Positions 13,570 through 36,903 of a stretch of DNA of 64,000 nucleotides are shown one piece after another. Below the pieces are notes generated by a model. The model was not told the DNA's origin. It saw only the letters and a program-made list of their open reading frames with translations, and ran no database searches. The first letter of the stretch is position 1; every line of letters begins with the position of its first letter. Both the position numbers and the translations under genes were made by a program. Source of the DNA: Oculina patagonica (lineage: Eukaryota); the NCBI RefSeq assembly GCF_052425735.1, contig NC_135765.1:31310001-31374000 (forward strand), given 5' to 3'.

Positions 13570-16500
13570 GTTTGAAAACGTTTATATTGCATATATATGC
13601 TTTGTCATTGTTATGCTCCAACGAGATCACTCTGCTAGTTTTTCACATAGTTAATAGAAAGAAATGGTTAGGAAACCAAGCAAACATGAAAGGAGCAAAC
13701 AAAGAGGCGGGATTTATGTTGGAAGGTCCACGACCCTGCAGATCTTTTGTTGTGGGCTCAAACGCTATGTACGAGTTACGTAATCGCAATGTTTATATTG
13801 GTTAGTGCATGAACAGACGTAACCAACTATTGATTTTTGTTAGCTTTTTTGCAGGGTTGACCCCCAAAATAGCAAACAAAATTTTAGAACATAACAAAGA
13901 ACGTTGCCAGGCTTCCTAACCATTTCCCTCTAATGGTTTACTAAAAACTTCAAATTATAGAGCAACAATGCTGTCCACATTTTGATGTTCCAAAAATCAT
14001 TGGCAAAGCAAAAACGACAGTAGACATTGTTCTTTTGTGGTCATGTGAACAGTTTCGTGCAGATAGAATCAGTTCAGTTTCCTTCACTGTGCTTGTGTTG
14101 TGTTCTCTCTTTCCCAGCACTTCTCTTGACTTAAAGTGCTAGTAATTTTTTTTTTTTTTGCTGTTTGAGAAACCTAGCAAAGGTGCTGTGATTCACGTCC
14201 ATTGTTCAGTTGAAGTAGCATTAATGCAAATGGAAGCAGTCAAGCTCTTAGGTTTTTTTGCTCTCAATAAGGCTTGCATCAAACCTTGTCACTTACTAGT
14301 TAATAAACATTGTTCATCCTTAGGAGGACCCAAGATGCAGCAATAACCAAGTTCGTAGGGCCTCAGATCGACAGTGTGTTGACCCGGGTGAAGAGAACCA
14401 GAAATGTATTGAACGGTGTGGCAGCGACAGTGCCCAATTTGCTAACGATACAGGCGTTTGCTATTGCCCTTACACCGTGGACTGTAACTCGACCTGTGAG
14501 AGTAACAGACCCAAGTGTTTAGTTCAAAGGCTCTTGGAAGGTACTCTTACAATAACATACACTGATGGCAATGGAGAATCACAGACCTTTAATATCACAC
14601 AGGAGCTAGGAGTAAATGACCATGACAATGGCAACCATGCTTGCGAATTTCTCTTTTTTGATGCTGAGCGACCAGTTTATGGGTTTGTGCCAAAGTCTCT
14701 TGATGAAGTGTCCAGTGCATTCCAACAGTCTCCTCAGCAATCGGCACGTAGACGGCGGAGGGCAGTTGATAACTCGACCAGTGCGCCACCTACTAACAAC
14801 GCAATCGCTAACCCGACATTGTGCCTGAACTACGGGCAAGCATTAACCTTTAAAATTGACATCAACCCGTTGAACCGCACCCAAAGTCATTATCCACGAT
14901 ACCGCAAGAATCATTTATTGAACAGAAATGATGCGTTCGACTATGGTAACTTTAGACAACTTCATTCTCTTGTGCGGGACTCAAACAAGACTCTGGACTT
15001 CTTTGTGCATGTGTTCACGCAGAATGGAACCTTCGTGTTTTATGACAATGCAGATCCTTTCCGTGAGACTATAGTAACTGTTGTCGAGCGAGGAACCAGT
15101 TGTCCAGTCGGCACCATTTCACCCACAACACAAAACATTTTGGTGACACTTGGAGTGAGTCGTCTTGAAGTAAGTATTTGTTGCTAGCAGGTAATAGGCT
15201 ACTTTCGACATATTAAAATTCAGCTTGATAACGAGGCCTAGAGGACACAAACAAAAGAAATGAATAAACATGCTTGTAAAATTCCTTTTGTTTGTGTCCT
15301 CTAGGCCTCGTTATTAAGCTGAATTTAAATACGTCTAAAGAATCCTTTTGGTTAACAAAAGGGAGGTTTTTTTAATGTCTTGAAAACATGGCTTAATGAG
15401 ATTGAAGTCATAAAAGGCTTATTGTGCACTATTAGCAGAGGTTTCACCTGCTGTTAGATCCTTTTAAACACGTTATTAAAGATTGTTCGTTCCTTCGTTC
15501 GTTCATTTATTTATTCATTCAACAACGATGGTTTGGCGATTTTAGAAAATGGCGTTACAGCAGAAAAGAATCGTTTGATTTCAGATTTTATTTCCCGTAC
15601 TATTTTGACCTCGTTATTCAAGTACCTATTTCTGGGCTTCTCTAAGGGCTAGACATAACTCACGTGTTAAACATGTTACAAAGTAGTAAATTGGCAAGGA
15701 ACATGCAGCTAATGTTATTTTCTTTTTGTTCTTCCAGCCGACTAACCTGTCCCCTGACTGGGCAGTAATCTGGGGCATGACCGTTTTCATGCTGGTCTGT
15801 ATTATTATGCTGGTGATTGCTGTCATCATATGGCGCCCAAGGAGCATTGGCAGATACCCTATCCGAACACTCAGGCCCAAATACAAAGCACTTGGGGCAC
15901 CCATCCCTGTTGTCCCTATCCCAGGTATGTATCTTTTAACCTGCAGTGTGTAACACAAGTTATTCCTGTTGTGGTGCATGAAATACGTAGGATATTACAC
16001 GTTGGCTCAAGGATATGAATTTTATGTTTGAGTAGCAAAAACAGTATCTCACCAGTGAGCGCAGCGAGCAAGAGAGATATTGTTTTTGCCACGAGAAATA
16101 AAATTCATATCTTTTAGCCAACGTGTAATGTTGTTTTATTATATAGACAGAAAATACCGAAGTGTCGAAAGCACAAACCTTTAATATGTGAACTCCTGTA
16201 CTTCTCCGTCTGGACTTTCTTAAATATCTCTTCTTTGGCCTCATTTGCAAGAAACTCCTTGAACTGTTTTGAAACATGTGAAGTTTTTCTTCTTTATGTC
16301 TGTATTTTCCTGCTTCTTGGTGAACAATTTTTAGTCGGCTTTAGTGAACATAACAGCGTTTGGCAAAGTTTGGCAGCCGTGCAATGGCGCGAAATGACGT
16401 CATCGATATCCTCACCAGTAGGGATATGGAAAATACGCCACTACGGTCACGGATGTAATTTTATATGATTTTTATCAGTGGCCTATATTCCAGTAAAACA

Positions 16501-19500
16501 CTCATTTATAAAATAAAGACGGTTAAAGCCAATATGTTTGATTGATCATTTATTATTATTTGTATATTAGGGATTGATGATCACGTGTACGACCTTGGCC
16601 CTCGTGGTTCACCAGAAGGGTCCTCGTTTGAGTCCCCCAGTGTAAGATTTGAGCTGGAAAACTTCAACGTTCGTACATTTTATGACAAATTAGAAGATCA
16701 AACGTTGCACGTATCATCGCAGCTGGCTCGTCACCAAGCAGACCTGAGAGCGTTCTACGACAGAATTAGCCAACAAGCGGAGAAGCTAAAAGGAATGTTA
16801 GACAGCATGGACGTATCGGCTCTTATCAAAGCCACGAAAGAGGCAGGAAGAGCCAGGGATGGCGAGGTGTGTAGTGAACCGTTGTCACTTAAAGGGGCTT
16901 TGTCACGGATTTTACCAGATTTTTGAACAGCCAAAATATGTATTTGTGTCGTAGGAAACCTTAAAATAATAGCCCATTTTTATTAAAAATTGCTATATTA
17001 GAGCACTGAAACTGTTAACTAGCGTCTTTGGCTCTGTTTTCTGTGGATGGCTAGGATAGAAATGGATTACAACTTGAAAATTTGAGGCTAAACTTTTCAA
17101 GTTGTTTCTGCCCATCTTCAAAAAATCAATATTTATGGCCGTAGTTTGATTTCTCCTCGCAAGTAAAGGTAATATCTTCCTTTAGATGTTCAAAAAATGT
17201 TTTCCATGGGTTAAGTTGCCTACTTCTAATTTCAGAAAAGTTTAGACCAATAATCCGCGAAATTCCCGTGACATAGCTTCTTTAATATTAATTTTAAGGC
17301 AAGCTTGTCTATACACGCGTGATCTTCGCATCTGTTAAAACTTATAATGTCCGTTTAAAATTGCAGGATGCCACTGAAGTGCTCCAGACAAGTGGTGTTG
17401 GTGAACCTAGCAAGCGATATGGGCTGACTGCAGGAGGCCAGGTTAGAGAGGAGGAGTTAATGGCGGCTCTTCAGATGCTGTTGGCAAAAGTTGAACAAGG
17501 ACAGTTTGCTATGCCAGGTTAGATAACTCATAATTAAGTGAATAAAGTTCGTATTGTTTTGGCACTTCTTTAGAATCTTAAAATTCTTCTCGATAAACCA
17601 ATAAAACCAACAATGCGGTGTTTATCATTTTAACTGTGATCTGTGTGAGGCAGATTACCTTATTAAAGGAAATTAACGCTTGTATAAATAAAGGTATTTG
17701 AAATTAACGTGACTTAAATTTTCGCGAATTGAAGGAAAATTTACTTCCCAATAAAGAAAATTTACGCGGAAGAACGGCGCGGAAATTAACGTTATCAAAC
17801 ATAAACGCGACGTAAATTAACGCGAATTTTTTAAATTCACGTTAATTTCATGAAGCGTTAATTTCCTGTAATAAGGTATATCGGGTATTCGTGTCGACAC
17901 TTGCACCAGCGCATCGAAGAACATAGAGGATCGGCTATTGGACGTCACATAAAAGAACAACATGGAAAGGAGCCAGATAACATCGAGAAGAATTCTAAGA
18001 TTCCAAAGAAGTGCCAAAACAAGCTTGAATGTTTGATTTTTCAAGTTCAAGTTCAGTTTAATTTTGTCTACATACCCATCTTACGCTGTGGGTCCAATTT
18101 GAACCAATTTAATCATCATCATTATTTTATTTCTTTTTGTTTTGTAGGCGTTGTATCAGGCACAAGTATTACTGTTCCAAGTTCTGGAATGGTTGTGATG
18201 GGAGGGGACGGTACTACAGCCACTACAACTTTCACTCAACAACCAGCTGGGTATCCTGTGGTCGAGGTACACGCAGGCGAGGCTGCTGGGGTACAGTGGC
18301 AGATCAAAGGAACAAGTGACGTCAGCGAGTTCTTGCGTAAAATGAACGCAGAGCGCATGCACCTTGAACAACAGATTGGAAGGGAAGAGGAGACCACTGT
18401 ACACAAGCTGCTTAAAGAACAGGTGATGGTTATAACCACTTAGCGGTCAAACGTTGCGCGCGTGCGCAGTTCCCGCCAAAATATCCACATACAAACTCCG
18501 CTTTTGAGTTAAAGTTAAGACAGTCACTAAAACGTTAAGCTTGGTACGCTGCTTATGCATAAGAAATTTTATAACTGTTATCCACCGTGTTTCCCCGCGA
18601 GTTATCTTGTTTCCTGGTGCTATTCCCGGGGGGACTCCCATATCAAAGAGACGGGGATGCTTGTCGTCTCGCTTAGGGGTGAAAATTTGGGATTTTGGTC
18701 TCTCTTAGGGTGTTCCGGGTAAAACACCAGTATTTTTAGCCGTCAAGGTCTCGTTTGGGGTTCCTCACAAAAAATATAGAAATATATCAGTTTTAAAATG
18801 TTCTAAAATGGTATCTTTTAGGGGTCAAAAAAGCGTGCGTAACGCATAGATTGGTCTCCTTTAGGGGTTTAATTCAAAATTCTCGATAAGCATCCCTATC
18901 TGTTTGATATGGGAGTCCCCCCGGGGGGTGCTATTTCATACCGTACGGTATTTTTTACCGTTTTTCTACAACAGTCTTGCACACTTTCGCATCAAATTCT
19001 TAGAAAAGGTCGGGGGGGGGGGGGGGTGGCGAAAACCGGAAGTGGCATTGGTTTTGTGCGTTTGACCGCTGTAAAATAACAAGCAAGCTGTCATTTTTAC
19101 TACAAAATGTGAATTCTGCTTGAATGTCGTGCAATCTCTTAAGCTTTCACACAAGCCTAGTAGCTTTCATTTCTTAACCTTCACACGAATCTGATGGCTT
19201 GCATTTTGTTTTACATGTAACTGAAAATTACTGTAGACTTATATTTATTTTCTGTTGATTTAGCTTAACACTGTACGAACGATATTGATATTTGGCACAA
19301 GTTGGAGACGAACATAACACAAACGAAATTATATTCTCGTTTATAAATCCATGAGAATCACCTTACTTGTGAATGTAGCACACATTTTCACTTAGAAAAA
19401 TTAATCACTATTTTAGCAATATTAATCAATCAATCAATCAATCAAACTTTATTTATAGAGTTACACGTGATAGTTTTACAACTAATAAATTTGTGGCCCT

Positions 19501-22500
19501 CTCTAATCTAATTTAAAATTTAGTTAAAAGCTAATTTAAAATCGAAATGTAAGTTAAAAATTTAAAAACTAATCTACAATATTGATCCAAAGGTAATTAT
19601 TACTAATATCACAATCTAAAAGTTATTATCGAAAAAAGGAGACTATTAAGACTATTAAATGTGAACCTTTTATCAGGCAATGAACTTTCTAAAATGATAC
19701 CTTTGTGGCTTGTAGTACAACAGTAAAATCCTTGTAATGTTATTACATATGTATAACTTTTTAACTTGAAGATGAAGTATTTAACATGACACGAGCATGG
19801 GACAAAGAAAAATTCTGAGTCCCCGACGGGGACCCATGCCCGTGTCATGTTGAATACTTCATCTTCATTATTTCTTACCGAGCTTAAAATTTACCACCTT
19901 TATTATTTACAACTTTTTAACTTTATTTAAATCAACAGGAAGAAAAGCGTTCAGAAGAGATGAAGAGATTAGCGGAGAACTTAGCGGACAAACTGTCAGG
20001 CGATCTGAGTGAAGATGAGATGAGAGCAGTCATGGAAGATCATGAAAGACAAGTTGCTCAGTTAGAGGGAGTGCTAGCATCCGAGAAAGAAAAGCAAATG
20101 GCAGCGCTGAGAGAAAAGCTGAGGCGAAGGAGAGAAGAAAAAGAAGCCGCCTTGTTAAAGAAACAGAAAGAAGAGGTACAATAATAATGGTGAAACTGAC
20201 CAACTGACAAAACCTAAACAACGAATTTCTTATTACAAAATCCACTCATTTTTCAACAGACACCTTATGAGAATAAAGAAAATCATCAACTAGAATTATT
20301 ATCTTAATGTTAATTACAAATTGACGTCAGTTTTTCTGTCCTCTTATTGATAAAAAAATGCGTCATAACTTTGTCAAAAGGCAAAAAGGTCAAATGCAAG
20401 GTTAAATGAAGAGAAAACACAAGTAAACTTGACAATTTCTAATTTTTTTTCAAACTGACCAATCAGGGCGCAACTATTGTCAATAACATTTCTCGCCTTC
20501 TCATTGGCTCCTGACAACACTAAAAAAAATATTTCATTGGCTAAAATACTGACAGTTTGACAGCACGCGTCAATCACGCCAATGTCTTGCATAAATTATA
20601 TGTGCCTGTACTCTTATTGATGATAAACATTAATCAATCAGCGTGTAAGAATTCGCTCAATTGTAAAAAACTAATTCTCTGAACAAACATAAAAAGAAAT
20701 TTATAAATTTCGGTAAAGAGAATTCTTATTTTAAACTGCTGATTTTGCTTAATTCTCCTTTAATTTTCAACAGGCCGGGAAGTCCAATATTCGTCTGGAC
20801 GATGTTCAACCGCTGGCCAGTATAGAGACCGTGCTGAAGACTCAAGAAAGTGTCCAAGACGTCATTGTTCAGGAAGAATCTATTGGGCATGCGCGTGCAG
20901 AGGAGCAGCAGTCCAATGAACAGGCGAACGTGTATCGTCGGCAGCTTGGTGACAAGTTCTGTGCTATGGTGGTAAGAATCATTACAAAACTCTAGTGCAC
21001 ATTAAATCAAAAACAGAAGGATGGGTGCCTGGGATATCCAGGGGGCTTCCACTGTGCCCCCCCCCCCCCCCGCCACACCCCCCGATGGAATACAGCTGGC
21101 TGGCAATCCCTGCAAAACAGCCATGAGCCCCCACCTCCAGCACCCGTCACACTGCACTGACAAGATCAGTGGAAAGGAGTCTCTGCAAAGCAGCCATTGG
21201 CCCCCACGGCAAGCCAAAGGGACCTCTGTGTTGACCACTAGGTCAGAACAGAGTTAGGTGCTCTAAAAAGAAACGTCCAAAAAGTCATTTAGCGCCTCAA
21301 CGGAGGTAGACGAGTCTTACATTTTTTTTAATGCAACGGCAGTAACAAAATATTACTGTTTAAAAAGTTTAAAGAGCGGATACAGGCATCCATGATGAAG
21401 AATAAGTAGGTTTTGCAGGAAAAAATTCCTGATTTTGTTGAGTTTTTTTCTAGGATGATCTTGTGGCATCCGGGTCTCTGTATGCTGATCAAGCGGAACA
21501 AATCAAACGAGAGCAAATGGAATTAGAGGAAAAGATGTCACGTGAGTTGGCTCAACAGCGTGCGCAACAGACAGCACTTATCAAGGAAAAGCTAGCTCAG
21601 AGAAAGAAAGAACGAATGAAGAAACTGAGAGAACAACAGGAGATTGAAAAAGCCAAGGTAAACTTGTTAATCTGATGCCCACACAACTGGCTTGTGTTAC
21701 TTTTGTTGTCGCGCAACCCTTCTTACCATGTTACGTAACTCTTCTTACCTTGTCACGCAACTCTTCTCGCCATGTCACGCAATCCTTCTCACCTTTTCAC
21801 GTAACTCTCGTTTCAGGTCATAAGTGAGGGCGGTGACGTGACAGCATTGCTGAAGCAGCACGAACAGGAAGTAGCAGCCCTGGAAGCAAGTTTTGAGGCG
21901 GAGGAGGCGCGTCACACTGCAGAGATTAACAAGAAGCTTAATGAGACACACATGGAGAACGTACAACAAGCTCACAGAGCACTGCTAGACAAGGTTAGCA
22001 TGAAATCCTTTGACTCCCAAATTTTTGTTTCTGATAGTCTTGAGGGGCTTTGTTATTCTGAAAAGCTAAAATTTATATTTGTGTTGTAGGAAACCTAAAA
22101 ATAATGGTTCATTTTTCATAAAAATTGCTACATTAAAGCACTGGAACTGTTGTTGTTGGTACTGTTGTTGTTGTTCTTGTACTGTTGTTGTTGGTACTGT
22201 TGTTGTTGTTCTTGTACTGTTGTTGTTGGTACTGTTGTTGCTGTTGTTGTTGTTGTTGGAACTGTTGCTGGAACTGTTGTTGTTGTTGTTGTTGCTGGAA
22301 CTGTTGTTGTTGTTGTTGTTGCTGCTGGAACTGTTGTTGTTCTTGTACTGTTGTTGTTGGTACTGTTTTGTTGTTCTTGTACTGTTGTTGTTGGAACTGT
22401 GCTGGACTGTTGTTGTTGTTGTTGTTGTTGTTGTTGGAACTGTGCTGGAACTGTTGTTGTTGTTGTTGTTGTTGTTGCTGGAACTGTTGTTGTTCTTGTA

Positions 22501-22564
22501 CTGTTGTTGTTGTAACGTTGTTGTTGGTACTTTTGTTGTTGTTGTATTTGTTGTTGGTTTTTTT

Positions 22565-22633
<69 letters not shown>

Positions 22634-25600
22634 TTGTTGCTGGAACTGTTATTGTTGTTGTTGGAACTGTTGTTGTTGTTTGTTACATCAACGTCTGCTT
22701 TAAATTTACGCTTTTTGCCGCCGTCATGAGTGACGTGAATTTCCTCTTGTGTTTTCTGCTGAAGGTTACAAAAGACAACTTAGACGCGGTTCTTCAACAG
22801 CAGATTATGGATCAGTTCAGGAAAGATAACGAGGCGCTGCTTGGACACCTTGAGCAACGAAAACAAAAATCTCTGGAGGACACAAAGGTAACAAAAAATC
22901 ATTTTTTTCAACAGTGCTGACAAATCGGTGAAAACTAAAATGGAGTCTTCTTTTGTACACAAGTTCTTGTATACACGCACTTAAAGGTGAAGTAAACTTT
23001 GCCAAATTTAAAGGAGAGGGGGGGGGTTTTTTTTTTGTTTTTTTGGGGTTTTTGAAAAAAAAAATGTTTTTTTTTTCTTCGTACAGGCGAAGCTTGCAGC
23101 CCGTCGTGCTCGTCGTCAAGAGGAGGCGCGCCGTCAGGCAGAGGAGGCTGCTGCTCAGCGGATCCTTGAAGAGCAGAGCCAGGCCATCGCGGCCAACAAA
23201 CCAGTCGACGCAGATCACGTGGTTGTACCTGAAGTCATTTTACCACGTGAAACGTCAGAAGAACAGGTTCGAAAAAAATAGTAGTTCACGTTTGATAACT
23301 ATTCAGACTACTTGGTTTTCTAAAAGCTGTGATAAAACTTAGTTTATAAAACCTGTAGCAGTCTTCATGAAGTTGTCATTTTGCAAAATGCTTTTGAAGA
23401 ATTTGCTACATTACAATTACTGGCATTCTCGTCACCATAGCCCTTTTCGTTTCTCTTAGCCGGCGGGGCCTGTGCACCAGTAAGGGCTTGAATTAATTCG
23501 ATAACAAAACTTGAACGAAAGTCAAATATGTCACGATTCTCCCACACACTATATTGAAACAACACGATTGCAGACTTGAAGACCGGAAGTCCAAGAATTT
23601 GGGACCTGAATCATTTGTCTCCAGAACCCTTCGTTTCTTATACCAAGGCCCTGCCGACTTATAGAAGCAAAGAGGGATATGGGGACGAGAATGAATCACT
23701 GGAAGTTAAGTTAAAGTTCGATCACGTGGGCAGATCAGGGTAGCAAACTGAAGCATCATTTAATTTCCAAACCATTGCTGCTTTCAGTATATTAAGATAT
23801 TTTTTTCTACCTACAGGCTTTACGAAACGAACAGGAACGAACATTAGCCGACATGCGCGAGAGGCACGAGCAAGATGCTCACAAAATAAACGAGAAACTC
23901 GAGCGAGAAGTGGCGACAGAGGAGGCTCAGGCGGTGGAACTGCTTGAAGCTGAGAAAGAACGAAGACTAAGAGAGCTGAAGGACAGACAAGCCGCGGAAT
24001 TAGCCGCTCGATCGAAAGACATGTCGCCTGAAGAAGTGCAACAGGTATTGAGAGAAGAGGGGCCTGAAAGAGTGAAATGCGAACTGGGATTTGGGCAAAT
24101 GTTCACTGGGAAAATGAGATTTGGGTCACTGGGACTGGGAATCACAAACAAAAAACAATGCAACTGGGAATGGGATTTAGGCAAAATTTGGGGTGGGAAA
24201 TGGGATTTATACCCCCCCCCCCCCCCCCCCCCCTTCAGAACCTCGAAGAACACTGCCTTTTTCAATGAGCAACAAAGTCTTGGAATTAAATAGGGACCTT
24301 TTTGGACTTTTCCCTTTACGTAGTGTTGTGGAAGACAATACCTAGACAACTTCTAGTCTGTATAAATATTTCCTCACGAATTCGCTTAGAGTTTATCGAG
24401 CCTACAAAGTCGATTTCCACGTAAGCGTGCAATGACATAGAATAGAGGATTAAAGGGACTATTTCACGGACTTAGCCAGATTTTTGAACAGCCAAAATTT
24501 ATATTTGTGTCGCAGGAAACCTACAAATATTATTACTATATTAGTAGAAACTCGGCGTGCATTGGAAATCCGCGAATCTGATTCTCTCCCACTGATTTCT
24601 ATTCGCCGATAGAAAACAGTCGCGCGCCGCGAGCTCAAGCGGTAATCTTGATTTGTCCAAAGTGCACAACATTGTAGGTTTTGGACTAAATCCTTAGAGT
24701 TTCACAAACAATTAGACTACTCGCTATTTGCTCATAGAAAACTCGGGCTTGTAGTCTAATTGTTAATTAGAGCACGGAAACTGTCAACGAGCATCCTTGG
24801 CCGCGGATGGCTCGGATAGAAATGGATTGGAACTTTTTCTAGTTGTTTCTGTGCATCATCATAAAATCAATATTTATAGCCGTAGGTTGATTTCTATCCG
24901 CAAATTGAGGTTATATTTTCCTTCAGATGTTCAAAGAAAATGTTTTTTATGGATTAAGTTGCCTACCACTAATTTCAGAACAGTTTAGACCAAAAATCCG
25001 CGAAATCCCCGTGTTGTAGCTCCTTTAAAGGCTTGCAGTTGTGCTATGCGTATTCAGTCAGCATCTTGGGGAAATATTATTGACAGCGTTTGTCCCGTTT
25101 TATTTTGTCTTCAGCTTTTGGCAGCCCATCAACAAGAACTTGAGGAAATCATGGAAAAGATGGATGTAGAGAAGCAACGTCAGCAAGCCAGTTTACACCA
25201 GAAGTTACTAGAAAGAAAGAAACGAAGGCAAGAGGCGCAACAACGTAAACAAGAACGAGAGATGGCGAAAGAACTATTAGAACAGAAGAAAGAACTTGCT
25301 GAAGTGCGCACACAACACGTGAGTAACATAACGATTGTTAATGAACGCGTGAAAACATTTCTCTACAATTTCTAAACTGATCATAATTTGAAGTTTTTCC
25401 TCATCTCTCATGGTAGGTATGGTATTGTAGCAGTTGAAAGGCTTTCTCACGGATTTTACCAGATTTGTGAACAACCCTTACTTATGTTTGTGTCGAAGGA
25501 AACCTTAAAATAATGGTCCATTTTTATTAAAAATTGCTATATTAGACCTCTGAAACTATTAACGAGCGTCTTAGGCTGCGGATGGAACGGATGGAAATGG

Positions 25601-28600
25601 ATTGCAACTTGATAATGGGTTAAGTTGCCTACCACTTCTTTCAAAACAGTTTAGACCAAAAATCTGCGAAATCCCCATGACGTAGCTACTTCAATTTACT
25701 TAGGACCCTCTAGGGTAGCGTGCCTTGACTGACCGGGAAACGCAATGTTTGAGTTACACTTCAAGTACAAACTTTCATCCTTTACGAAAGAATTGAAGTC
25801 AAACGAGTAGAAAGTATATATCTATATATTGTTATTTTGTTGACAGGTAAAGGAAGCCGAGAAGCAAGCAATGATTGAAGGTATTCGGGAAAATGGATCT
25901 GAAGCGGCAGAGTTTGTTATTCGAAAGGTAATAAATACACTCTATTCTTTCATTTGCGTTTTAGTGATACCCACAAATTAACTTTCGTTTCGTCTTCTAG
26001 AGTAAGGTTAGGGAAACACAGCGTGTCATTAGTATTTCTCCGTTTTATACAGTGGAAGCCCGCTCTACGGACACCTGCATGCTTAATACGGACAGTTTCG
26101 TTGGTCCCAACGAAAAGCTCATATATAACCCACTTATTACGGACACCCGTTAATACAGACAACAGACACTTAGTTTCATCGTCAACCCCGCTTTACGGAC
26201 AATTTTCATTGTCAAAGTAAAGTTACGAACGTTGTCGAGTTTTAAGAACAGTAAGGTAATTTTAGAAAGTAATATAACTATTACTGGCAAGGCCATCCTG
26301 ATACATTTGAGTTATTGCTTTGCACATTAAATTGACAGTTAATTCTGCGTTATTTGATAGGATCAGTGACCACAATAAAATGTTTTATTTTTTGGCCTCA
26401 GGTTCTCGAAAAACGACACAGCCAAGAGCTGAAAGACTTAGAGCGCATGTTCCAAGAAGAACGTAAAGTGGCAGTCGACGAAGCACTGGCTAAGATGGAG
26501 GAGCGACACGCTCAGGAAAGCGATGAATTGCGTGCTCAGAATGAAAAAGAGTTAAAAGAACTTGAGAAGCAACAGCTGAGTCCTGAAGAGCTACAGCAGA
26601 GACGAGCACAGTTATTAAATCAACAACAATTACGGCAGAGCGCGCTTGACAAAAAACACGCTGATCAGCGGAAACAGATCCAACATGGCGTGCAGTCTGA
26701 CTGGGAAGTACGCTTTGCACGCGCCAAGTTGGAACTCAAGGAGAAACATTATCAGGTTTGTTGCGGTTCTTTGATTATTAGAATTTCTTTTTCTCCATTC
26801 TTAGGTGTTAGTTCAGTAGCCTGCGTAGTTGGCGGTATGTTGGGGTAAACGCACGCGCGAGCAAGTGGCGAGGCCGCGAGAGACCTAGGAAGGTGGAAGC
26901 AAAAAGCCTTTCGCTTTTTCCCCCCTAGGCCCCTCGCAGCTTCGCCGCTTGTTCGTGTGTGTGTGCGTTAACCCCAACAAAACCGCCAGCTATGTGGGCT
27001 ATTAGTTCAGGTACAGCCGTAGTGAAGTAATTTTAGGTTGAAGGTTAAATTTGACAATAAAAGTTGACAGTTACTTGTGACAAATTACATAGTTCGGGCC
27101 TGTCTGCCGCAGCATTTCGTCCCTGCCAAGGGACTCTCTAGAGACCTGTCTGTTTAGCAAACTCGTCGAGCATCGCGCTCAAAGTCCCGTTCGCAAGCAA
27201 AATAATGACAGCAATCTCGCCTTATATCGCACAAGAATTCCCGACAGCACAAAATCCCGAGTTAAAATTGACAATAGAAGTTGACAGTTACTTGTAACAA
27301 AATACATAATTCGTGGCTAGTCTTTTTGGCAGTTACTGAATGGGGTGTTTCAAGTTTAGCTGTAGTCTTGAAACAATTTTTACACACGTCCACATTTAAC
27401 TCCTTCATTCTCCTCCTCCCCTTACCCTCCCCCAGGAATATGCAGATGCCTTGAATGAGCTGACCCCAGAGCAGGCAGAGGAACACAGGAAATCAGTCGA
27501 AAAGGCAATGGCAGCTGCGAGGGAACTGGAAATAGTCAAGCAGAAGTTAGATGAACAGCGGGCGGAGAACGAACAGAAGCTCAAACAAGAAAATGAAGGT
27601 TTGTTGGTTTCACCAATTCCCCCGCAACCACTGCACATAGCCAAAGCATAAACGACGACAATATTTATTTAACGTGAGGGTAAAAAGAACCTGAAACGGT
27701 GCAACAAGAACGAACCACAATACATCTAATTTAAAGGGGATTTGTCGCCGATTTTAAGAGATATTGGAAAAGCCAAAATTTACATTTGTAGAAAACCTAA
27801 AAATAACGGCCCATTTTTATTAGCAATTGCTTTATAAGAGCACTGAAACTGTTAACAAGCGTCTTTGGATGCAGGTGGCTCGGATGGAAATGGATTGAAA
27901 CTTGAGAATGGCGTCACTTTTCAAGTTTTTTCCGCGCGTCTTCAAAAAATCAATATTTACAGCCGAAGTTTGATTTCTATCCACAAATTGAGGTTATATC
28001 TTCCTTTAGACGTTCAAAGATAATGTTTTTACATGGGTTAAGTTGCCTACTACTTTTTCAGAGGCCGGCGACGTGACGAGCTCCAAGATCACGTATAAAG
28101 TCTTAAAATTTTAGAAGTGTCTTATAACACAGACAGTAGCAATGTTACTTAAAATAGGTAGCTTTAAAACTGTTCTTACGCATGTGTTCTTTTTCTCTGC
28201 AGCATTTGAAGCTGAACAACAACAAAAGTTGGAAGAGGAACTAAAGGCGTTTGACAAACAACTGGAACTAGAGGCAGAGGAAGAACAGAAAAAGAACGAG
28301 AAAGCAATCTTGGCTTTGAACGCTCGCAAAGAAACTCTGCTAAAAGAAAAGAAAGCTAAAGTCAAACAGGAAATGGACAAAATGAGCAAACAAGGGGCTT
28401 CTAAAGAAGATCAAGAAGCCATCTTAAAAGAGCACAGCAAAGACTTGGCTAAACTCATGAACAAGATGGATGCTGACAGAATGAGAATGCAGAGTTCACT
28501 AGAAGAGCGTTTGAAGAAGAGACGCGAGGCAAAACGGCAGGCCAAAGTGGAAGAGCTGACAAATCAAAATGAAGAAGAGAAAAGAGAGTTTGAAGAAAAG

Positions 28601-31600
28601 GTTCAATCGGAGCGCGACCGAGTTCAAGCCGAAGAGGTAATTGCTTTGAAAGAGAGCATCCACGTGGATAACCTCGTGTCGGCGACGATCGAATCCGAAG
28701 CTGCCCCTCCACCTGTACCCCAAGCCCGACTGATGCCGGACAGTTATCGATTAGCAGCGCCATTAAGCGAGGGTGAATTGGCGTCGTTGCTACTATCGTC
28801 ACCGCTGTACCAGAAGATCGAAGGCATCAAATCTTTGTTGAGTGGTGGCGCTGGCAAGGGAGGACAGTTCAGTGCCCCAGGTAAGGGTTGTGATTGGTGC
28901 TGGCTGTAGAACCCGTATGAAAATGTGGATCGCATAAATTAATAGGGATACGTGTGTGACGACAAATAAACCATTTGTATAACCATGCCATGCAAATGAA
29001 ACAGCCCTACATGGCTGCCACTTTACGGGTAATAGGCTGTGCGCATGTGTACAGGTGTTAGTCAAACCGCGGAGATGTATTCTGTGACGATTGCTGTTAA
29101 ATGGTTTAATTACTAAATCCGTTCATACACCTTATTTGAAAATGGCGGAAACTACATTCTTTTGTTTTCATGTTAATTATCCTCCGTTGCCTCGATCGCA
29201 TCTGCAGAATTCAAAAGAATCTTTGGCTTAAAACGAGGCAACGAAGGTCAATTAACATGTAGACAAAAGTAAAATGTATTCTCCGTCTCTTTGAAATAAG
29301 GTGTATGGGGGATGGTAGATTAGGAGATTTGAAGTAGTTGTTAAAACATCAACGTGGATACTTTTAGTAAGTCAAGATTTCGTATGAGCAATTTTACACA
29401 CAATGAAGAGCTGTTTACCGCTTTTTTATTATAAAATGTAAATTTGAGCAAGTGTCTTATTTAGTCATTTGAGGTGTCTAATAATTCATCCTTCTTTTGT
29501 CCCAGCACCTGGTGAAGGTTATATTGACATCAAGGATGACACGCTGTGGGGAGGGGACGATGAACTCGTCCCAGTTGACCTCAACACGCTGCCTGCGCGA
29601 GCGTTCGTCACATACAAGTTTGGTTCCTTCATTGTCGACTTACTATCCGTCCATTGTCATCATCTTCCAGTCACGCTGTTACTCGCCGATAAACTGCCAC
29701 CTAACGCACACCTACAGAGGAACGCTTATCGCAACTCCTTCTTCTACGACGCTAGCAACCGCATTTTGTACATACGCGCCGAGCGAATGGACAACGTTGG
29801 CGAGTTTGTTTTGGTTCTCGTTCACTGCCTGTCACACATCGCTTGTGGAGACTTGCGTGACGACTCACATCCGGGCTTCATGAAAGAGTTCCATCACGCC
29901 CTGGCTGTGATGTGTGACGACTTGTTCTTCGCGCGTTACAGGCGTTCTTCTGCGCTTGCGCGTACGCTGTCGTCACTTCCGGCTAATGATGATTTAGAGA
30001 GCGCCAGTCGAGTTTTATTGGAGTCTGTGTTTGGTGATGCTCACACAGAGGCGGACAAGTCAAACGTAGTTGAAGGACTCTTAGACGCCAAGCTTTTACG
30101 CGGCGCCAACAAAGATGGCGTGCATTTTACACACGAAGGCATCGTGGAGCGCTTGTCCAAGTACAGCAACTTTGCCGTGGAGTCGAAGCTTCGATCTTTC
30201 TTGGGTGACGTGGACGAAAAGGCTTCCCATGCTCGACTTCAAGGCACGGAAGAGTTTATTGATCAACGACTTGTTGAACTGCAAGGACCACAGGCTAAGG
30301 ACAGACCAGTGTCACGCTACGCTCAGTCACGCGGTAATATGATGTCGCGTGGTGTGTCACGGCAGATATCCCGTGCCCAGGCTTTGTCACGCACTGCCAC
30401 TAGTTTGCCTATCTCTGGAAAAGCCACTGGCAAACCTAAGGAAGACGAAGACCTTTACAAGACGTTCTTGCAGGTATGTTCATGTGATTTGGTTGAGTGT
30501 GTTATTGACAAAGGTAAACTAGCCCTCTAGAGTTGGCGATTCTGCAGTGGAATTGCCCCATTACGTATGCTAACTGTAAGACTTTATCAACAGAAGAGAG
30601 CGTTTGTTGCTTTTTTAATTGGAAAATAACTAACCATCAAAAAAGCATTCAACAAAAGGATTTGTTTCCTTCACGACGTTGTTCTTACTGGTGTTAAATG
30701 ATATTGGGTTACTCGACCAATCAAAAAGATAACAACTGTATTTGCAATGGTAGAAAACAAGAAATATGTGTAAATATTAAAGGGACCGTGTCACGGATTT
30801 TAGCCAAAATTAAGGCATAGGAAATGACCATCAAATTTGTTTAAATGTATAAAATAACCTCTTAAAACAGTGAAGGAATATTTAAATAACACACCAAATG
30901 CAAAAGAAGGTACGGATGGTCAAAAGTGTCGAAGATTGAAACGGATTGCAATGTGGGCTTTTGAAATATGGTCCGGCAGAACAGTTTTCAAAGATAATAT
31001 TGTCTGCTTGTAACTTTAATTTATGATGCCCGGGAGTCACATTTAGCTGCAAGGAAGCTATGCTTTTGTCATTTAGTATCAAAGAATTAATTTCTTTGCA
31101 AACATTTAGTTTCATAGCGAATATTTGGCAAAATTTAATAACATAAGATTAACTTAGCCGTGACATAGTCCCTTTAATAATTAATACGGAATCCGTCAGA
31201 ACATCTAGTATTAATTGGACAAAATTATGTGTTACTGTTTCAAATATCTTATCAAAAGAAATCATTTCTTACAACACCAAAAATCGAAAACAAATTTCGA
31301 AGTTCCGCTGTTAAAATACGATTTTAGTTTACATGGTTCTTGTGAACTTTGAAATTCATTTTCTCTGGCTCTGATAAGAAATTGTTGTTGGTATTAACAC
31401 GGATAATTACTTACATCTTTAGCTTTTAAAAATGGTTGCAATTAACGCGATACGATTTAAATTATACTGGTTCTCATTTTTTTTTTTTTTTTCAACTAAA
31501 ATATTACTCGTTTTCCTGATGGATTCCGTCTCAAAACTTTCATCGAGAGGCAAAGTTACAGGTCTTCAGTGGTATAATGCATAAATGTAATAATTGGTTT

Positions 31601-32031
31601 AACGATTTCTGTTTTAGGTTCAAGTGGACGACATGCAAGATACTGTTGACAGTTTGAATCAAGAATTCGCTCAGCTTTCCAGACAATCTTTGGACGTCAC
31701 AACAAACCTACGAGAACTAGAACAAGAACTGCTGGCTCAAACGGACCTCTTCAGGGAGTCAGCGGAGGGCAGCACGGAACATGCGCAGCACAAGAATGCC
31801 GTCCGACAAACCACCACCAAAATTACGACCGCAAAGGCTTCGCTGGAATCCATAAACTTACAGAAGAGCAACTGTTTAGAACGACTGAACTTGTTCAAGA
31901 AAAGGCTTGAAGAAAAACAAGCACAACTAGAACAGCATGTCAGCAAGCCGGAAGGCGAAAGGAAACAACAAGCAGAGAGAAAACTTCAATCTGCCATGGG
32001 AAAAACACAGAAGAAGAAACCAAAGAAGTGA
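1..32031 (+). CDS. Giant GCC2/GCC3 (ephrin-receptor-like) cysteine-repeat single-pass transmembrane protein with coiled-coil cytoplasmic tail; 5' end lies outside the window
   Basis: Hand-spliced GT-AG exons with consistent phases: <1-1403, 1964-2083, 2964-3452, 4092-4331, 4878-5054, 5502-5855, 6519-7124, 7784-8266, 8894-9141, 9876-10272, 10901-11368, 11788-12231, 12973-13569 (one extra nt), 14324-15169, 15738-15924, 16571-16866, 17367-17517, 18148-18422, 19939-20175, 20774-20971, 21454-21657, 21817-21993, 22765-22887, 23087-23266, 23817-24044, 25115-25318, 25847-25927, 26402-26755, 27436-27598, 28203-28880, 29506-30473, 31618-32031 (TGA). About 3,995 codons in total. Confidence 0.85.
2730..2866 (+). 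mobile_element. SINE 3' body fragment
   Basis: GTGCCTCTCTCCAC...CATCCAGGGGGAGTAGAAATA.TCCTAG...GCAGACTTTACC resembles a cnidarian SINE core as recalled. Confidence 0.5.
3567..3781. mobile_element. PIF/Harbinger-like MITE
   Basis: TIR GGCCTGGTTCACACTA with TTA target duplication on both sides. Confidence 0.8.
4388..4640. mobile_element. CATAG-ended MITE (related copy at about 13646-13935)
   Basis: About 38-bp imperfect TIR CATAGTTAATAGAG...GAAGCCCGGCAAA. Confidence 0.7.
5070..5365 (-). mobile_element. 3' fragment of an RTE-like LINE
   Basis: Minus strand encodes WIGHVLR...KRVLEW..GKQKR.RP, then ...LVEDLCSTRNKED and a TAAG-repeat tail. Confidence 0.6.
14324..15924 (+). CDS. Juxtamembrane and transmembrane exons of the giant gene (polybasic furin-type site, beta-rich domain, single TM helix)
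   Basis: Exon 14324-15169 contains QSARRRRRAVD. Exon 15738-15924 encodes WAVIWGMTVFMLVCIIMLVIAVIIW followed by basic RPRSIGR (positive-inside rule). Confidence 0.85.
15196..15346. repeat. About 150-bp foldback palindrome (MITE-like)
   Basis: AATTCAGCTT.ATAACGAGGCCTAGAGGACACAAACAAAAG followed by its reverse complement. Confidence 0.75.
16571..32031 (+). CDS. Cytoplasmic exons of the giant gene: long E/K/Q/R-rich coiled coil, globular zincin-like domain (exon 29506-30473) and terminal coiled coil
   Basis: Heptad-rich ORFs 19960..20184, 21463..21675, 23853..24293, 25046..25375, 26354..26848, 28142..28909 and 31624..32031 splice in frame; ORF 29469..30530 has globular composition. Confidence 0.85.
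16893..17281. mobile_element. TTAA-flanked non-autonomous DNA transposon (Kolobok-like)
   Basis: TTAA|AGGGGCTTTGTCACGG...CCGTGACATAGCTTCT|TTAA; homologous copies at 24454-25024, about 25438-25692, about 27735-28060 and about 22043-22145, with a related TIR pair at about 30781-31173. Confidence 0.75.
17555..18045 (+). mobile_element. Penelope-like GIY-YIG endonuclease relic, split by a MITE and preceded by an inverted copy of part of itself
   Basis: Joins across the MITE as VYHFNCDLCEADY|IGYSCRHLHQRIEEHRGSAIGRHIKEQHG...KKCQNKLECLIF; 17555-17595 is the reverse complement of about 17981-18021. Confidence 0.7.
17656..17878. mobile_element. MITE with TACCTTATTAxAGGAAATTAACGCTT terminal inverted repeats (TA at both ends)
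   Basis: The two ends are reverse complements; inserted inside the GIY-YIG relic. Confidence 0.75.
18625..18926. mobile_element. CCCGGG-ended MITE with 9-bp TSD
   Basis: TIR CCCGGGGGGACTCCCATATCAAA; TSD GGTGCTATT on both sides. Confidence 0.8.
21700..21812 (+). repeat. ~21-bp tandem minisatellite filling a short intron
   Basis: Units like CTTCTTACCTTGTCACGCAACT repeated 4-5 times up to the acceptor at 21816. Confidence 0.7.
22145..22686. repeat. Compound (GTT)n microsatellite with GGAACT/GTACT interruptions and a ~65-nt poly-T
   Basis: Directly visible; it generates the low-complexity L/C/V/F ORFs. Confidence 0.95.
23424..23693. mobile_element. Foldback MITE CATTCTCGTC...GACGAGAATG
   Basis: Long imperfect TIRs; 9-bp TSD AATTACTGG/AATCACTGG (1 mismatch). 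Confidence 0.7.
24454..25024. mobile_element. Second TTAA-flanked Kolobok-like copy, with a nested element at about 24541-24767
   Basis: Same TIRs and internal sequence as 16893-17281; the nested insert is homologous to about 60888-61152. Confidence 0.7.
26817..27001. mobile_element. TAGCC...GGCTA foldback MITE
   Basis: Near-complete hairpin; 9-bp TSD TTAGTTCAG. Confidence 0.78.
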
Positions 32032-33113
32032 ACATAGCGTAACACTTTCTACTTTTTGTACTTTCGTATTTTTTAACGTGTTATTTATTTGCATTGATTG
32101 CAAAAAAATATATTTAATTGTGTAGGCTGAATACGGAGAGATGACACATCACGCAATGTTAACTTGACGTCGAAGAGAACTATTTTTCTAATATTTTTGT
32201 ACGCCATTAATCCGTAGATGTAGTTAGTTTATAATTGTAGGTCAGATACATTTTTTGTGGCAATAATAGATTGCTCTTATTCAAAATGGTCATGTTTCGG
32301 ACATCGAGAAACATGGAGATATTTAATTCACCTAAAAACGTGGTACGTTTTTTCTTATTTAACACTTTGCCAACGAACTGTGTTCAACTTACAAATTAAG
32401 TTTTATTAAGTTGATTTATTTTTACCAATTGTATTATAGCCTACAGAAGAGTTAGCCTTTTCAACGTAGTATTTTGTATTGATTTTAGAAAAAGATCGGT
32501 TTTGTTTTTGAACTAAAGAAACTCAGTGTAATATAAATTATTAATTGCAAAGAGCTTGAATTAAAAGTAGTTTTGTAAAAAAAATTACCAATTTGCCTAT
32601 TTCTATCGGACTGAATAACACAACTGCTAAGTTTTTTAAAATAATTTTTATTTTAGTCCACATACGCGCGCAAACTTACTTGCCATTCGATTAGACTATT
32701 GTACATCTCTTAAAATAAAGGGAGGGCAGGTTTCTGTACAGGAAAAGAACTTGATCATTTGACCTTTGAAGTATAGTATTGATCTTTGAGCAATGATCTT
32801 GATTTTAACAAAATCGAAAACTGAAGGAGGTGGTTTTTTTTTTAAAATGGGGCAGAAAAAAACTGTGCTTGCTGGCCTCTTGTAGAAACACTGATCTTAT
32901 TTCAGTCCCGATGGCCGTTGAGAGCAAAATTCGTTGTTATGGGGATTCGCATATGAAGGCCTAAAAGGTGGGTCCTAGTCCCCCGACGGCGCGCAAAGCA
33001 AACACAGTATGAATTTCGAGTCAGGAAATGGCTGGAAGTAGGTAATTTGGTGGAAAAGTACAACACCACTGACCCAAATGAATACGGTCTCATTGTACTA
33101 TTCATGGTAGGAT

Positions 33114-36100
33114 TCAGTTTTGACCTCCCCAGCTGTGATAGCGCGCTTTGCGTCTCAAGTCTTCAATGCTTGTTTGTTGGTGAAACTGTCGAGTGTAGTC
33201 AGCCTGGCCGACATTGCCCATAAAACTGGCGTGGTTACACATGCACAGGTGCTCAACGCATCCAGCCCCGTATGAACCATGGGTAAACGGCGCTAATGAC
33301 GTTTCTTGTCGTAGCTGAGTCACGTGACTTGGAGGTTTGTAAGTTTGTGTTGGCGGAACAACAAAACCTCTCTGACTTGAGCCTTCTTGTCGACGGCACT
33401 TTGCGCGTCTGTTTTGAAACCAGATCTGCGAAGAAATTAACGATATTTTGAGTGGAAATTGACAGTGACATGCGCTTTACTGCAAAGATGGAAAAAATTC
33501 AGTCAAAAACTAAACTCACTTGAAATTTTGAACCAACACTTGCCTTACCGGAAAGAACAAAGTTAATATTAAATGCCAGAAAATGGATCTGACATCCATT
33601 CTGTAAAGAATTTTTCAAGTCGACTCCTTCGAGGTAGGAGTGGGGGTGTTACTTAAAATAACGCGTATTAAATTTGACCAAGACAAATTTTAGCCAGCAC
33701 TAAGTAAAGCGATCTTCGCCCAACTCGCTAAAATCGCTCAAGTAAGTAGCCGCTAATAAGAGTAACCTAAAGGTAACTCTTGGATCGTTTTATGCAAGAT
33801 GAAGCGTTCCATCAAAATAATATCAATCTGAAACCAGTGAATAATTGTTTCCACAAGAGAGGGCCCTCTTGATTTCCAGTTGTACTAACGAATTTTTCGA
33901 AATAAACCTGATCTACAATATTTTCTTATTCTACAACAAAACAGTTTGTTGGCGCCATTTTGAAGCATCCATTTTTACTAAACAAACCCAGAAGTCCTTG
34001 CGCAAGCGTCTTACCTGAACCCTTGCTTCTGATAGGCCCATTCTCTTGGCCAGTGTCTCGCGCGTCAAGGCATCTGGGTAATGCGTTTGATCAAAAAGTT
34101 TCTCCAACTCCCGTAATTGTTCTCTTGTGAAATTTTTCCTGTTTCTTGGAGGTTTGCATCGCTGTGAACGTTTAGGTAAATCATCTGAAAAATTAAACCG
34201 AGTATACACGGGTAATTATTACGTGACAATTTTTATATGACAAATATATTTGATCGTGTAGATGACAAAACAATTATTTGTCAGCAGTCCAAAGTTCAGT
34301 GCGCCAGTAATGAACTTTGGACAGCAGAGATACGCACAGAGATACGTGCGCACAGTGCCCAGTGGGAGTTTGGGAGATTGGGGACCACATATGCTGACGC
34401 AATATTTGCCACATTTTATGTGACGAGTCGATCTTCACGAGCAATATTTGTATGTGACAACTTTTATTTATCACATAAGAGCTAACACGCCAGCTTGTCA
34501 GCAAATATATTTGTCACATAAAGATTGGTCAATTTTTCTCAACTACACCTCGAGCAAATAAAAATTGTCACACAAAAATTGCTCGTGTAAACTAGATTTT
34601 AAGGAAACGAGCAAACAGAAATAAAATGTTTGAGAAGTCTAGCGAACATAACAATCTCTCAATTGAAATTCGACCTGTCAAGACAATCAGAGTTGCCCCT
34701 CTATTTTGCCAAGATTAGAATTCGGTCCACATTACATAAGTTTGTACGAAAAACGGAAAAGTTCGTCGTACACGGTCACCGCAGAGCAACGCGCAAAATA
34801 AACATCATACAGTGGTGGCGCATGCGAAATCTATTCAATTTTTCACAGCATACGATAAACCGGACTGATCTTGTTACGGCATAATCTTCGCGAAACTTCC
34901 GTTGTCGACTGTTATTAAACTCCGTTTTAAAATAACTCAACGAAAGAAACCTTTTCCCTAAAAAAATATACGCCGTTTTAAATTTGGCGAAACGAGCGAA
35001 ATTTGTCATAATTGAATACAGCAAAAAGAATCGGTGAAAATTTAGCGGGAAACAAAGACTTTATAAAGTGTTTCCTGAATTAAAAAAGAAATGATCCCAC
35101 TGAAAACTTCCATTTCCGTTAATTGCCCGTAATGTTGGTGTTGTATTGTACATGTAGTATTAACGAGCTTTCATCCCCCATGCTAAGTCTTTGAGACTAA
35201 GCGCCTTTTAACGTATTTTATAAAAAAGAAAATTGGCCTTTAACTGATCTTGGATGTGATTCATGTAAATGCAACCCATCATATCCCATATATCTTCGTA
35301 TCAGTCACATCAGCATTTTACCATAAAGTAAATTACAATTATCTGGTCTTTGTTGCAAATCAACCAAAATATAACAGTATTAAAGGATCAATTAGCCCTT
35401 TTAGCTGCATATGGAAATACGAATTCTCCTTTCACATTTGTCATACATTTCTGTCCATGTTAATTCTAAAGGCCTGGCAAAACAAGGAAACATGTTTCCA
35501 GAAACACTCGTAGCGCGCGCATGTTTCCCCAATGTTTCTCAGTTTTGCCATCCGGGAAGCATTGTTTTAAGGCGTCAATTTTTGTCTCCAAGAAGCAAAA
35601 TTTGCTTTGCTACACCGAAAAAACATTCCGTACTTCTGCGCAGCATGGAACCATGGCAAAACGGGGAAACAATTATGGAAACATGTTTTCTCGTTTTGGC
35701 AGGCCTTGAGATTTTTTGTTAAATTCAGTTGACATTTTCCCTATGGTCACATATCTGTTTGGCAATGTGTGGGAAATTTTAAATGCTGAACACTTGATCT
35801 TGTTAAATTGTGAAGAAAACAACCCCGACAGTATCTTTTATTTATGTTTTTTCATTTGTTACCCGAAAACGAGCAGCTTTGTCAGTTTTAACTTTATCTG
35901 TTTTCGACACCAGTAGAAAATCATCTGCCAAGAAATCAAGGCCAGTTTTATTACTAAAGAAACTTCTGTTTTCCTGATTGTGGTCAATTGTTGAAATCTT
36001 TGATAAACTTCTATGAAATCTTTGATTATTTCTATGACTGTTTTTACTGACAGCGATATCTTGGATCTCTTGATAAAGGAAAATTCATTAATAATTCGAG

Positions 36101-36903
36101 GCTTCAAACGTTTAAATTTTATGAAAATCGGATTGGTACATTTAAGGCATGCTTTGTGTCACTGCCACACTGATCAAATTTGAATGAACAGAAAACAGTA
36201 AAAGGTCCTGTTTTAAATTAAAGAGTTTTTACAAAGAAGAAGAAAATTAAGAAAAAAATTTAAGAAAGAAAATTAGTGAATAGAAACAAAACGATTAAGC
36301 TGCATATTACGTCTATTAACCTAATCAGGCATTTCATTTTATAAGTACCACGGAAGCGTGTCGAAAATAAATCCATTTTAAGGTGAAGCCTTTCTTTAAA
36401 GAGAAAAACGAAACTGCATGTAACCGAATTAATTATGGCATGAAAAAGACTGAACCTTCAGTTAAAAGGCAATGTATTTCAATTCTGTTTTCCTTTAGTC
36501 AGTTTGTTATATACAAACACAGTACAGTTTACCAACAATTTGTAATCTTAATAACTAGCTTGACCTTGAATGGCTTAACGAAGAGAGATAACGAACATTA
36601 AACCTTAAGGTGGCATACAATTCTAAAGGATCAATGAAGAGCTTTAGTGTTTCTTTAAACCTCCTTACCTTGAACTGTATAACTGGTCATTTCATTCCGC
36701 GTGTCTTCTTTTTCATTGCTTCGTGAGCCATTTCGTTTGTCGCTTAAAATCTCTGCAATGCTGAATGGCAGAGACACTAAATTCGAAGAAGCTGAAGGCC
36801 TATTGTCTTGGTTTCTCGGCTCAGGTTTAGAGTCAATCGGTGTTCTTCTGTTTTCTGGCTTTCCTTTGTCAAACCTCGAAACGAACGCTGTCAGACCCTC
36901 CAT
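33114..36903 (-). CDS. Shox: PRD-class Q50 homeobox gene, Shox-like, 238 aa, 3 exons (36669-36903, 34015-34184, 33114-33425)
   Basis: Spliced homeodomain [46 protein letters not shown]|[14 protein letters not shown] with the PRD-typical intron between codons 46 and 47. N-terminal eh1-like FSIAEIL, C-terminal OAR-like [16 protein letters not shown](E/Q)THYPDA and AKCR(K/R)QE match Shox as recalled. Splice phases sum to 717 nt. Confidence 0.8.
34193..34601. mobile_element. MITE in homeobox intron 1, adjacent to the exon 2 acceptor
   Basis: Imperfect TIRs (AAACCGAGTATACACGGGTAATT / AATTGCTCGTGTAAACTAGATTT) and internal (TG)TGACAA/TTGTCACA repeats. Confidence 0.6.
35471..35705. mobile_element. 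Harbinger-like MITE in homeobox intron 1
   Basis: TIR GGCCTGGCAAAACAAGGAAACATGTTTCCA / TGGAAACATGTTTTCTCGTTTTGGCAGGCC. Confidence 0.65.

Follow-up and report, generated by a model that had tools for sequence, protein, structure and literature searches.

A giant membrane-protein gene and its domain exon

We analyzed a 64,000-nucleotide stretch of the genome of Oculina patagonica (RefSeq assembly GCF_052425735.1, contig NC_135765.1, positions 31,310,001 to 31,374,000 of the forward strand), hereafter the window, with positions counted from its first base. The window carries a gene for a giant type-I membrane protein that comprises Cys repeats, one transmembrane (TM) helix, a helical tail of ~1,200 residues, a domain encoded by a single exon at 29506–30473 and a last exon of 137 residues; the start of the gene lies upstream. 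The domain exon is the subject of this study. Its product belongs to a family of zincin-fold domains that is distinct and as yet has no name, and in which the general-base Glu of the HExxH motif is replaced.

The gene structure was established by tblastn with a predicted crinoid protein annotated as ‘uncharacterized’ (XP_033122761, 3,985 residues), which maps colinearly along the window from the Cys repeats through the domain exon and thereby assigns this exon to the giant Cys-repeat gene. The Cys-repeat exons are matched from base 5 to about 13.6 kb, the TM exon aligns with crinoid residues 2352–2407, where the sole hydrophobic segment is at 2358, and the domain exon aligns with residues 3553–3874. 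TM segment and domain are separated by about 1,170–1,300 residues in the crinoid ortholog. A first-pass annotation made from the sequence had proposed a giant membrane protein with Cys repeats and a ~1,200-residue helical tail, which this colinearity bears out. Pfam matches to Ephrin_rec_like in the Cys repeats were weak to borderline. The recovered pieces of the tail are rich in charged and helix-prone residues (E 17%, A 11%, L 11%, K 10%, Q 10%, R 8%). The parts of the gene, all on the plus strand, are the following:

2–15184, plus strand: ectodomain exons with ephrin-receptor-like (GCC2_GCC3-type) Cys repeats (Pfam Ephrin_rec_like, tblastn colinearity)
14324–15184, plus strand: juxtamembrane exon (crinoid tblastn match at 14327–15172)
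15735–15902, plus strand: TM exon (crinoid tblastn colinearity)
15759–15833, plus strand: single TM helix, followed by a basic RPRS...RPKYK segment (positive-inside)
16594–28880, plus strand: at least eight exons of the cytoplasmic helical tail (colinear crinoid tblastn matches)
28201–28880, plus strand: exon preceding the domain exon, E/K-rich helical tail (joints 27596/28201 and 28880/29506)
29506–30473, plus strand: domain-bearing coding exon (open frame of 322 codons from 29508, no stop)
31618–32031, plus strand: last coding exon, 137 residues, helical, rich in E, K and Q, with KKKPKK before the stop (open frame, joint 30473/31618)

The earlier proposal that the protein ends in the domain did not hold, as ~110 residues of helices, a disordered S/R-rich stretch and the 137-residue coiled-coil exon come after the core.

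Splicing of the domain exon was assessed with RNA-derived contigs placed on positions 27300–32300. Contigs from three runs of three studies (X1, X5 and X8) contained the joints 28880/29506 and 30473/31618 across GT..AG introns. The exon is flanked by AG and GT borders, and its first two bases finish a codon begun at 28880. Because the contigs skipped 27597–28200, 28881–29505 and 30474–31617, all with GT..AG ends, and showed zero depth in the intron bins adjoining the exon, they derive from spliced RNA and confirm both of its borders.

Some RNA data showed a different pattern. Raw reads of a poly(A) run (X24) covered E/K-rich exons and the last exon at 5–31x (28135–28635 and 31642–31975), with no reads over the domain exon (28636–30472); the spliced contigs of X8, which bear the same species label, do cover it. 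This gap likely reflects oligo-dT internal priming on A-rich coding sequence, and an isoform that skips the domain exon may be an alternative. Within the introns flanking the domain exon, contig depth reached hundreds to ten thousands at 27801–28134 and 30640–31474, and irregular joints and loose ends were numerous. Both segments look like repeated or transposable-element sequence that is abundant in RNA assemblies. Furthermore, an intron in the tail region contains a long low-complexity tract (22105–22917) that can be read through in all three plus-strand frames, as stretches of V, C, L and F, and looks like a microsatellite-like expansion.

Fold, motif and conservation of the domain

The exon translation on which the first-pass annotation relied was correct, as were its His codons at 29823, 29835 and 29868, corresponding to H106, H110 and H121 of the exon product; the codon of C107 is at 29826. 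AlphaFold2, run on the family alignment, modeled residues ~15–140 with predicted local distance difference test (pLDDT) values above 94. The predicted secondary structure, read with DSSP, consists of a helix (30–50), three strands (56–62, 78–81 and 86–90), a short helix (91–95), a helix resembling zincin active-site helices (97–113), on which H106 and H110 sit, and a further helix (122–156). The model thus shows the features of a zincin fold: an N-terminal helix, a mixed three-stranded sheet, a helix with two His one turn apart and a following helix. The exon was divided into these parts:

29565–29942, plus strand: zincin-like core, exon residues ~20–145 (predicted structure)
29721–29738, plus strand: N72-A-Y-R-N-S77 motif (family consensus NAFRNS), before strand 2 (N72, A73 and S77 at least 90% conserved)
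29823–29837, plus strand: H106-C-L-S-H110, counterpart of HExxH (both His invariant; aligned by hhalign with H-E-I-S-H of HtpX)
29862–29864, plus strand: D119, in the loop that follows the active-site-type helix and its terminal Gly turn (invariant in 47/47)
29868–29870, plus strand: H121, in ‘SHPGF’ (not conserved)
29919–29921, plus strand: D138, in the following helix (acidic in most homologs)
29994–30281, plus strand: helical extension, exon residues ~163–258 (moderately conserved in invertebrate and protist homologs)
30294–30440, plus strand: low-confidence S/R-rich linker, exon residues ~263–311 (pLDDT below 50)

Structure searches with this model returned zincins as all leading matches in six independent libraries, including the following:

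PDB (Foldseek): selecase (prob 0.99), Wss1 (prob 0.97), jannalysin, BlaR1, ZMPSTE24, IrrE and SPRTN on top; no match at E ≤ 1e-3
AFDB Swiss-Prot: Mycoplasma pneumoniae MPN_634 and MPN_635 (E 1.8e-5 and 2.3e-4), then dozens of HtpX proteins and a Wss1 homolog
AFDB clusters: eight uncharacterized family members first, prokaryotic ‘ATP-binding proteins’ next, matched in their C-terminal domains (E 4e-6 to 2e-4), and IrrE, WLM, BlaR1 and M48 after these
ESM Atlas: MPN635_N/HATPase_c_3 proteins, phage proteins and clusters of YgjP, SprT, WLM and M48
BFVD viral library: IrrE, SprT and M48 proteins

The agreement of the six libraries makes the fold assignment secure, and the zincin fold expected earlier was thus recovered by structure prediction and Foldseek. 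A zincin fold with WLM/Wss1, the minigluzincins, M48 and SprT as closest relatives, combined with a missing Glu, is in our assessment highly probable.

An exhaustive phmmer search yielded 564 homologs at E ≤ 1e-3 and 314 at E ≤ 1e-10. All named ones are called ‘uncharacterized’, ‘hypothetical’ or ‘trichohyalin-like’. They stem from invertebrates (a crinoid, Saccoglossus and Mytilus), fishes (sharks, rays, a chimaera, bichir, carp (si:dkey-103g5.4) and lungfish) and tetrapods (frogs, turtles, crocodilians, lizards, snakes and birds), as well as from the protists Chromosphaera (Ichthyosporea), Diphylleia (CRuMs) and Fabomonas (Ancyromonadida). Among invertebrates, the family occurs in cnidarians, echinoderms, hemichordates and molluscs. 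The zebrafish gene is si:dkey-103g5.4, and Xenopus and chicken have relatives; a word-based search from a turtle homolog returned no mammal. Matches in the AFDB clusters have mammalian-looking accession numbers. About 30 long homologs share one hydrophobic segment, followed by 900–3,600 residues rich in E, K, Q and R and by the domain at 100–400 residues from the C terminus. Their ectodomains vary from ~4,700 residues of Cys repeats down to a few hundred residues without them. Given this constant order below a variable ectodomain, the conserved unit is the TM segment with rod and head rather than the Cys-repeat array.

Conservation was analyzed in an alignment of 47 animal and protist sequences and, for counts at single positions, in 198 fetched homologs carrying the motif. 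P64, G98, H106, H110 and D119 are invariant in the alignment, and G39, A60, N72, A73, S77, R93, F124, F128 and F140 are at least 90% conserved. The family consensus reads NAFRNS ... R-x-E-R ... G-x-F-x-L-V-L-V-H-x-L-A-H-I ... D-D-x-x-P-x-F-x-x-x-F. The protein in the window carries all invariant columns and the shared TM-rod-domain architecture. At the position after the first His, the 198 homologs have C (113), A (38), T (27), S (9), I (7) or V (4), and none has Glu, Asp or Gln. The loss of the general-base Glu, read earlier as a replacement by Cys, therefore applies to C107 here and, with other residues as well, to every homolog counted. Of the three His ligands that had been proposed, H106 and H110 stood up to comparison, being invariant in 47/47. 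The third did not: the H121 position is mostly N (85) or D (43), with H in only 24, S in 18 and E in 12 of the 198. The D119 position is Asp in 193/198. Position 138 is acidic in 43/47 (D 26, E 17) and Q, H or K in the remaining four.

Links to known zincins at the sequence level were sought by profile alignment. hhalign placed V-L-V-H-C-L-S-H-I-A-C-G-D of the domain on V-I-A-H-E-I-S-H-I-A-N-G-D of HtpX, with 45% identity over 20 columns and P values of 0.0026 against Escherichia coli HtpX alone and 0.0011 against a clean profile of 77 gammaproteobacterial HtpX sequences. This register sets H106 and H110 on the two His of HExxH and C107, therefore, at the Glu position. Counted by eye on E. coli HtpX, NAF there and NAY here both appear to lie 34 residues before the first His, ungapped. 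Profiles of YgjP, mixed M48 and SprT aligned with the same helix only (P = 0.024, 0.031 and 0.2, respectively), and a YbeY profile left the motif unaligned (P = 0.55); these four profiles came from a crude extraction of central open reading frames (ORFs), some in wrong frames, and their scores are lower bounds. hhalign with a low mact setting or in global mode gained no reliable columns beyond the active-site helix. WLM (PF08325) was sought in the O. patagonica genome as a source of a eukaryotic profile, without a match.

Database searches offered no further link. Pfam found only Ephrin_rec_like in five full-length homologs, in the ectodomains, and homologs listed with precomputed Pfam domains had none over the domain region. 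PHROGs gave nothing recurring on the 47 members, and a language-model atlas returned only unnamed phage clusters at 0.90–0.91, within the range of chance. With sequence links this weak and no match in Pfam, PHROGs or PDB sequences, we place the domain in a separate family within the zincin fold. The earlier label of a WLM/SprT/DUF45-type domain is accordingly kept in part: the profiles of HtpX, YgjP and SprT align their HExxH helix with HCLSH and its helix, and the 47 members have no Pfam match to go with this. Strict membership of WLM, SprT, DUF45 or M48 was rejected on the latter ground.

Some 190 kb past the downstream end of the window, the contig carries a paralog of the domain (31528241–31531621) that is 52% identical over residues 2–130. 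It keeps H-C-L-S-H and D-D and has an intron right after F-Y-K, and the next exon resumes with C-C-Q-D-M-F-F-A-R; many ORF-derived database matches ending in ‘FYKV’ look like this type. Some sauropsid gene models (turtle and bird; P0244, P0246, P0255 and P0264) are fused to ankyrin repeats annotated as NF-kappa-B inhibitor zeta, which suggests that the family gene adjoins NFKBIZ in turtle and bird genomes and offers a handle for mammal synteny. Within the window, the gene is followed by loci unrelated to the domain: a homeobox gene (33114–36903, minus strand), a 1,789-residue Gypsy-like gag-pol open frame (41533–46899, plus strand) and a tandem cluster of open frames resembling rhodopsin-type G-protein-coupled receptors (52252–56337 and 61376–62581, plus strand).

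Possible function of a Glu-less zincin head

With the general-base Glu replaced in every member seen, the domain is most likely no canonical peptidase, and sequence comparison across the family makes classical peptide hydrolysis unlikely. The general base has been missing since before opisthokonts, CRuMs and ancyromonads diverged. A metal ion is probably still held, since the two motif His and the Asp are kept invariant; by sequence and by analogy, its site would be formed by H106, H110 and the Asp nine residues on. In WLM proteins and metzincins, the third metal ligand, a His or an Asp, follows a Gly turn. By this analogy, D119 would serve as third ligand and is probably a better candidate than H121, and D/E138 is a possible alternative, either as a gluzincin-style ligand or as a general base.

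We favor, with confidence only a little above even, a non-catalytic, metal-stabilized peptide- or protein-binding head on a long cytoplasmic rod. The former substrate groove and the metal site would together form a docking head, which would engage a protein or peptide where the rod ends. Several results weigh against this interpretation. hhalign assigned probabilities of at most 20% to any relationship with known zincins. Pfam reported nothing on the domain, either in the exon or in any of the 47 members, at E ≤ 10. Sequence searches of the PDB with the single protein and with the profile returned noise only, to adenovirus IIIa in the helical extension. Moreover, the invariant ligands and the second acidic site at D/E138 (43/47) would be compatible, too, with an enzyme whose general base has moved.

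Such an enzyme is the most serious alternative, possible and, in our estimate, rather improbable. It would be an active, non-canonical metallohydrolase with its metal on H106, H110 and either D119 or D/E138, and with the other of these two acids or a substrate group as base. At the tip of the rod, it could act on peptides, nucleic acids or lipid head groups. YbeY, which is catalytic with HxxxH and no Glu, provides a precedent, and strict conservation of ligands is unusual for a dead enzyme. However, the Glu position is small or hydrophobic in 198/198 homologs, the candidate base D/E138 is replaced in 4/47 and the YbeY profile does not align with the motif.

Less probable still, and in our view doubtful, is a metal-free structural relic in which His and Asp stabilize the fold or an interface and the domain forms a cap or oligomerization knob for the helical tail. 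The long helices after the core could pack as coiled coils, and sequence profiles of known zincins barely recognize the domain. Against this, H106, H110 and D119 show the ligand chemistry and spacing of classic zincins, and no other polar position is invariant across the 47 deep-branching sequences; structural roles seldom demand a strict His-x3-His plus Asp.

The first-pass annotation had also proposed that Cys in place of Glu makes a redox- or Zn-sensing switch. Cys is the commonest residue at position 107 (113/198) and would lie beside the putative metal site, but the 85 other homologs (43%), many of them deep-branching, have A, T, S, I or V. Because these members do without it, Cys is not essential to the function of the family and is at most a lineage-specific addition. 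A Cys-dependent sensor is therefore not a property of the family, and we regard a Cys switch as very improbable. Lastly, the notion of an artifact, in which a structure predictor overinterprets a chance HxxxH in a helical region, draws on the commonness of this short pattern and the lack of a Foldseek PDB match at E ≤ 1e-3 and is effectively refuted by 564 homologs, an invariant motif, pLDDT above 94 and zincins leading in six libraries.

Beyond the docking head that we favor, a bolder and distinctly speculative interpretation is that an ancient single-pass class with a metal-loaded, Glu-less zincin head on a cytoplasmic helical rod of >1,000 residues acts as a regulated catalytic or metal-dependent switch and not as a mere anchor. 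If true, this would constitute a new principle of signaling or mechanotransduction that connects very large ectodomains of varied make-up with a site far inside the cytoplasm, in a class predating the split of opisthokonts, CRuMs and ancyromonads.

Literature searches on the zebrafish gene, on giant GCC2_GCC3 TM proteins, on inactive zincins and on ephrin-receptor-like repeats of Nematostella found no paper on the family. These empty searches and the lack of characterization of the named homologs agree with the initial impression that no receptor with such an architecture has been described. The fold is known, whereas the family, its Glu-less H-x3-H...D signature and the TM-rod-head architecture appear undescribed: despite at least 564 detectable members, the domain is unnamed, lacks a Pfam model and a structure, and figures in no publication that we could find. 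It represents a natural case in which a zincin scaffold fixed the loss of its general base very early and kept ligand-type residues invariant, and is thus well suited to studies of the role of ‘dead’ metalloproteases. The combination of a TM helix, a very long charged helix and a head beneath variable ectodomains points to an unrecognized, widely conserved membrane-to-cytoplasm device, which the relatives in zebrafish (si:dkey-103g5.4), Xenopus and chicken open to genetics.

Comparison with known systems

Outside the family, the nearest structures are uncharacterized bacterial and phage C-terminal domains, namely MPN_634/MPN_635-like proteins (E 1.8e-5 and 2.3e-4) and those linked to HATPase_c_3. 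The match to MPN_634/MPN_635 extends over 125 residues at a root-mean-square deviation of 2.7 and is a likeness of structure. Proteins of this group also head the ESM Atlas list and are the neighbors returned by the language-model search. These prokaryotic and phage proteins do not have the TM-plus-rod architecture. MPN_634/MPN_635, the HATPase_c_3/MPN635_N proteins and small phage proteins may be a prokaryotic and phage sister group of the eukaryotic domain.

Among characterized proteins, the WLM/Wss1 metalloproteases of DNA–protein crosslinks (PF08325; PDB 5xbn and 5ln5) are among the closest in structure, the level at which WLM was compared. The WLM motif is HExxHxxxxxH, with its third His six residues past the second. 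The domain described here, in contrast, has no Glu after the first His, a variable residue (L116) at +6 and the invariant D119 at +9. It is cytoplasmic and membrane-tethered on a long rod, whereas WLM/Wss1 proteins act in nuclear DNA repair. The group of M48, M56 and minigluzincins (HtpX, Ste24, BlaR1, selecase, jannalysin and abylysin) is likewise close in structure. Compared with these, our domain lacks the Glu, a PF01435 match and membrane-embedded helices around it, and its third ligand is probably D119 instead of a distant Glu.

SprT/SPRTN (PF10263) and YgjP/DUF45 (PF01863) gave scores that were not significant, and the domain has neither their Glu nor a Pfam match to them. The endoribonuclease YbeY (PF02130), with HxxxHxxxxxH and no Glu, shows no profile similarity and differs in the spacing of its third ligand and in its conserved residues, as there is no His at +6 here.

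A precedent comes from other zincin-like families, including some CLCA and ADAM members, in which catalytic residues of HExxH have been substituted in a conserved, non-random way and no role has been assigned to the inactive domains (PMC3650047). In CLCA and ADAM proteins, however, the substitution is sporadic among otherwise active members, whereas the family described here is Glu-less as a whole across eukaryotic supergroups and has kept both His.

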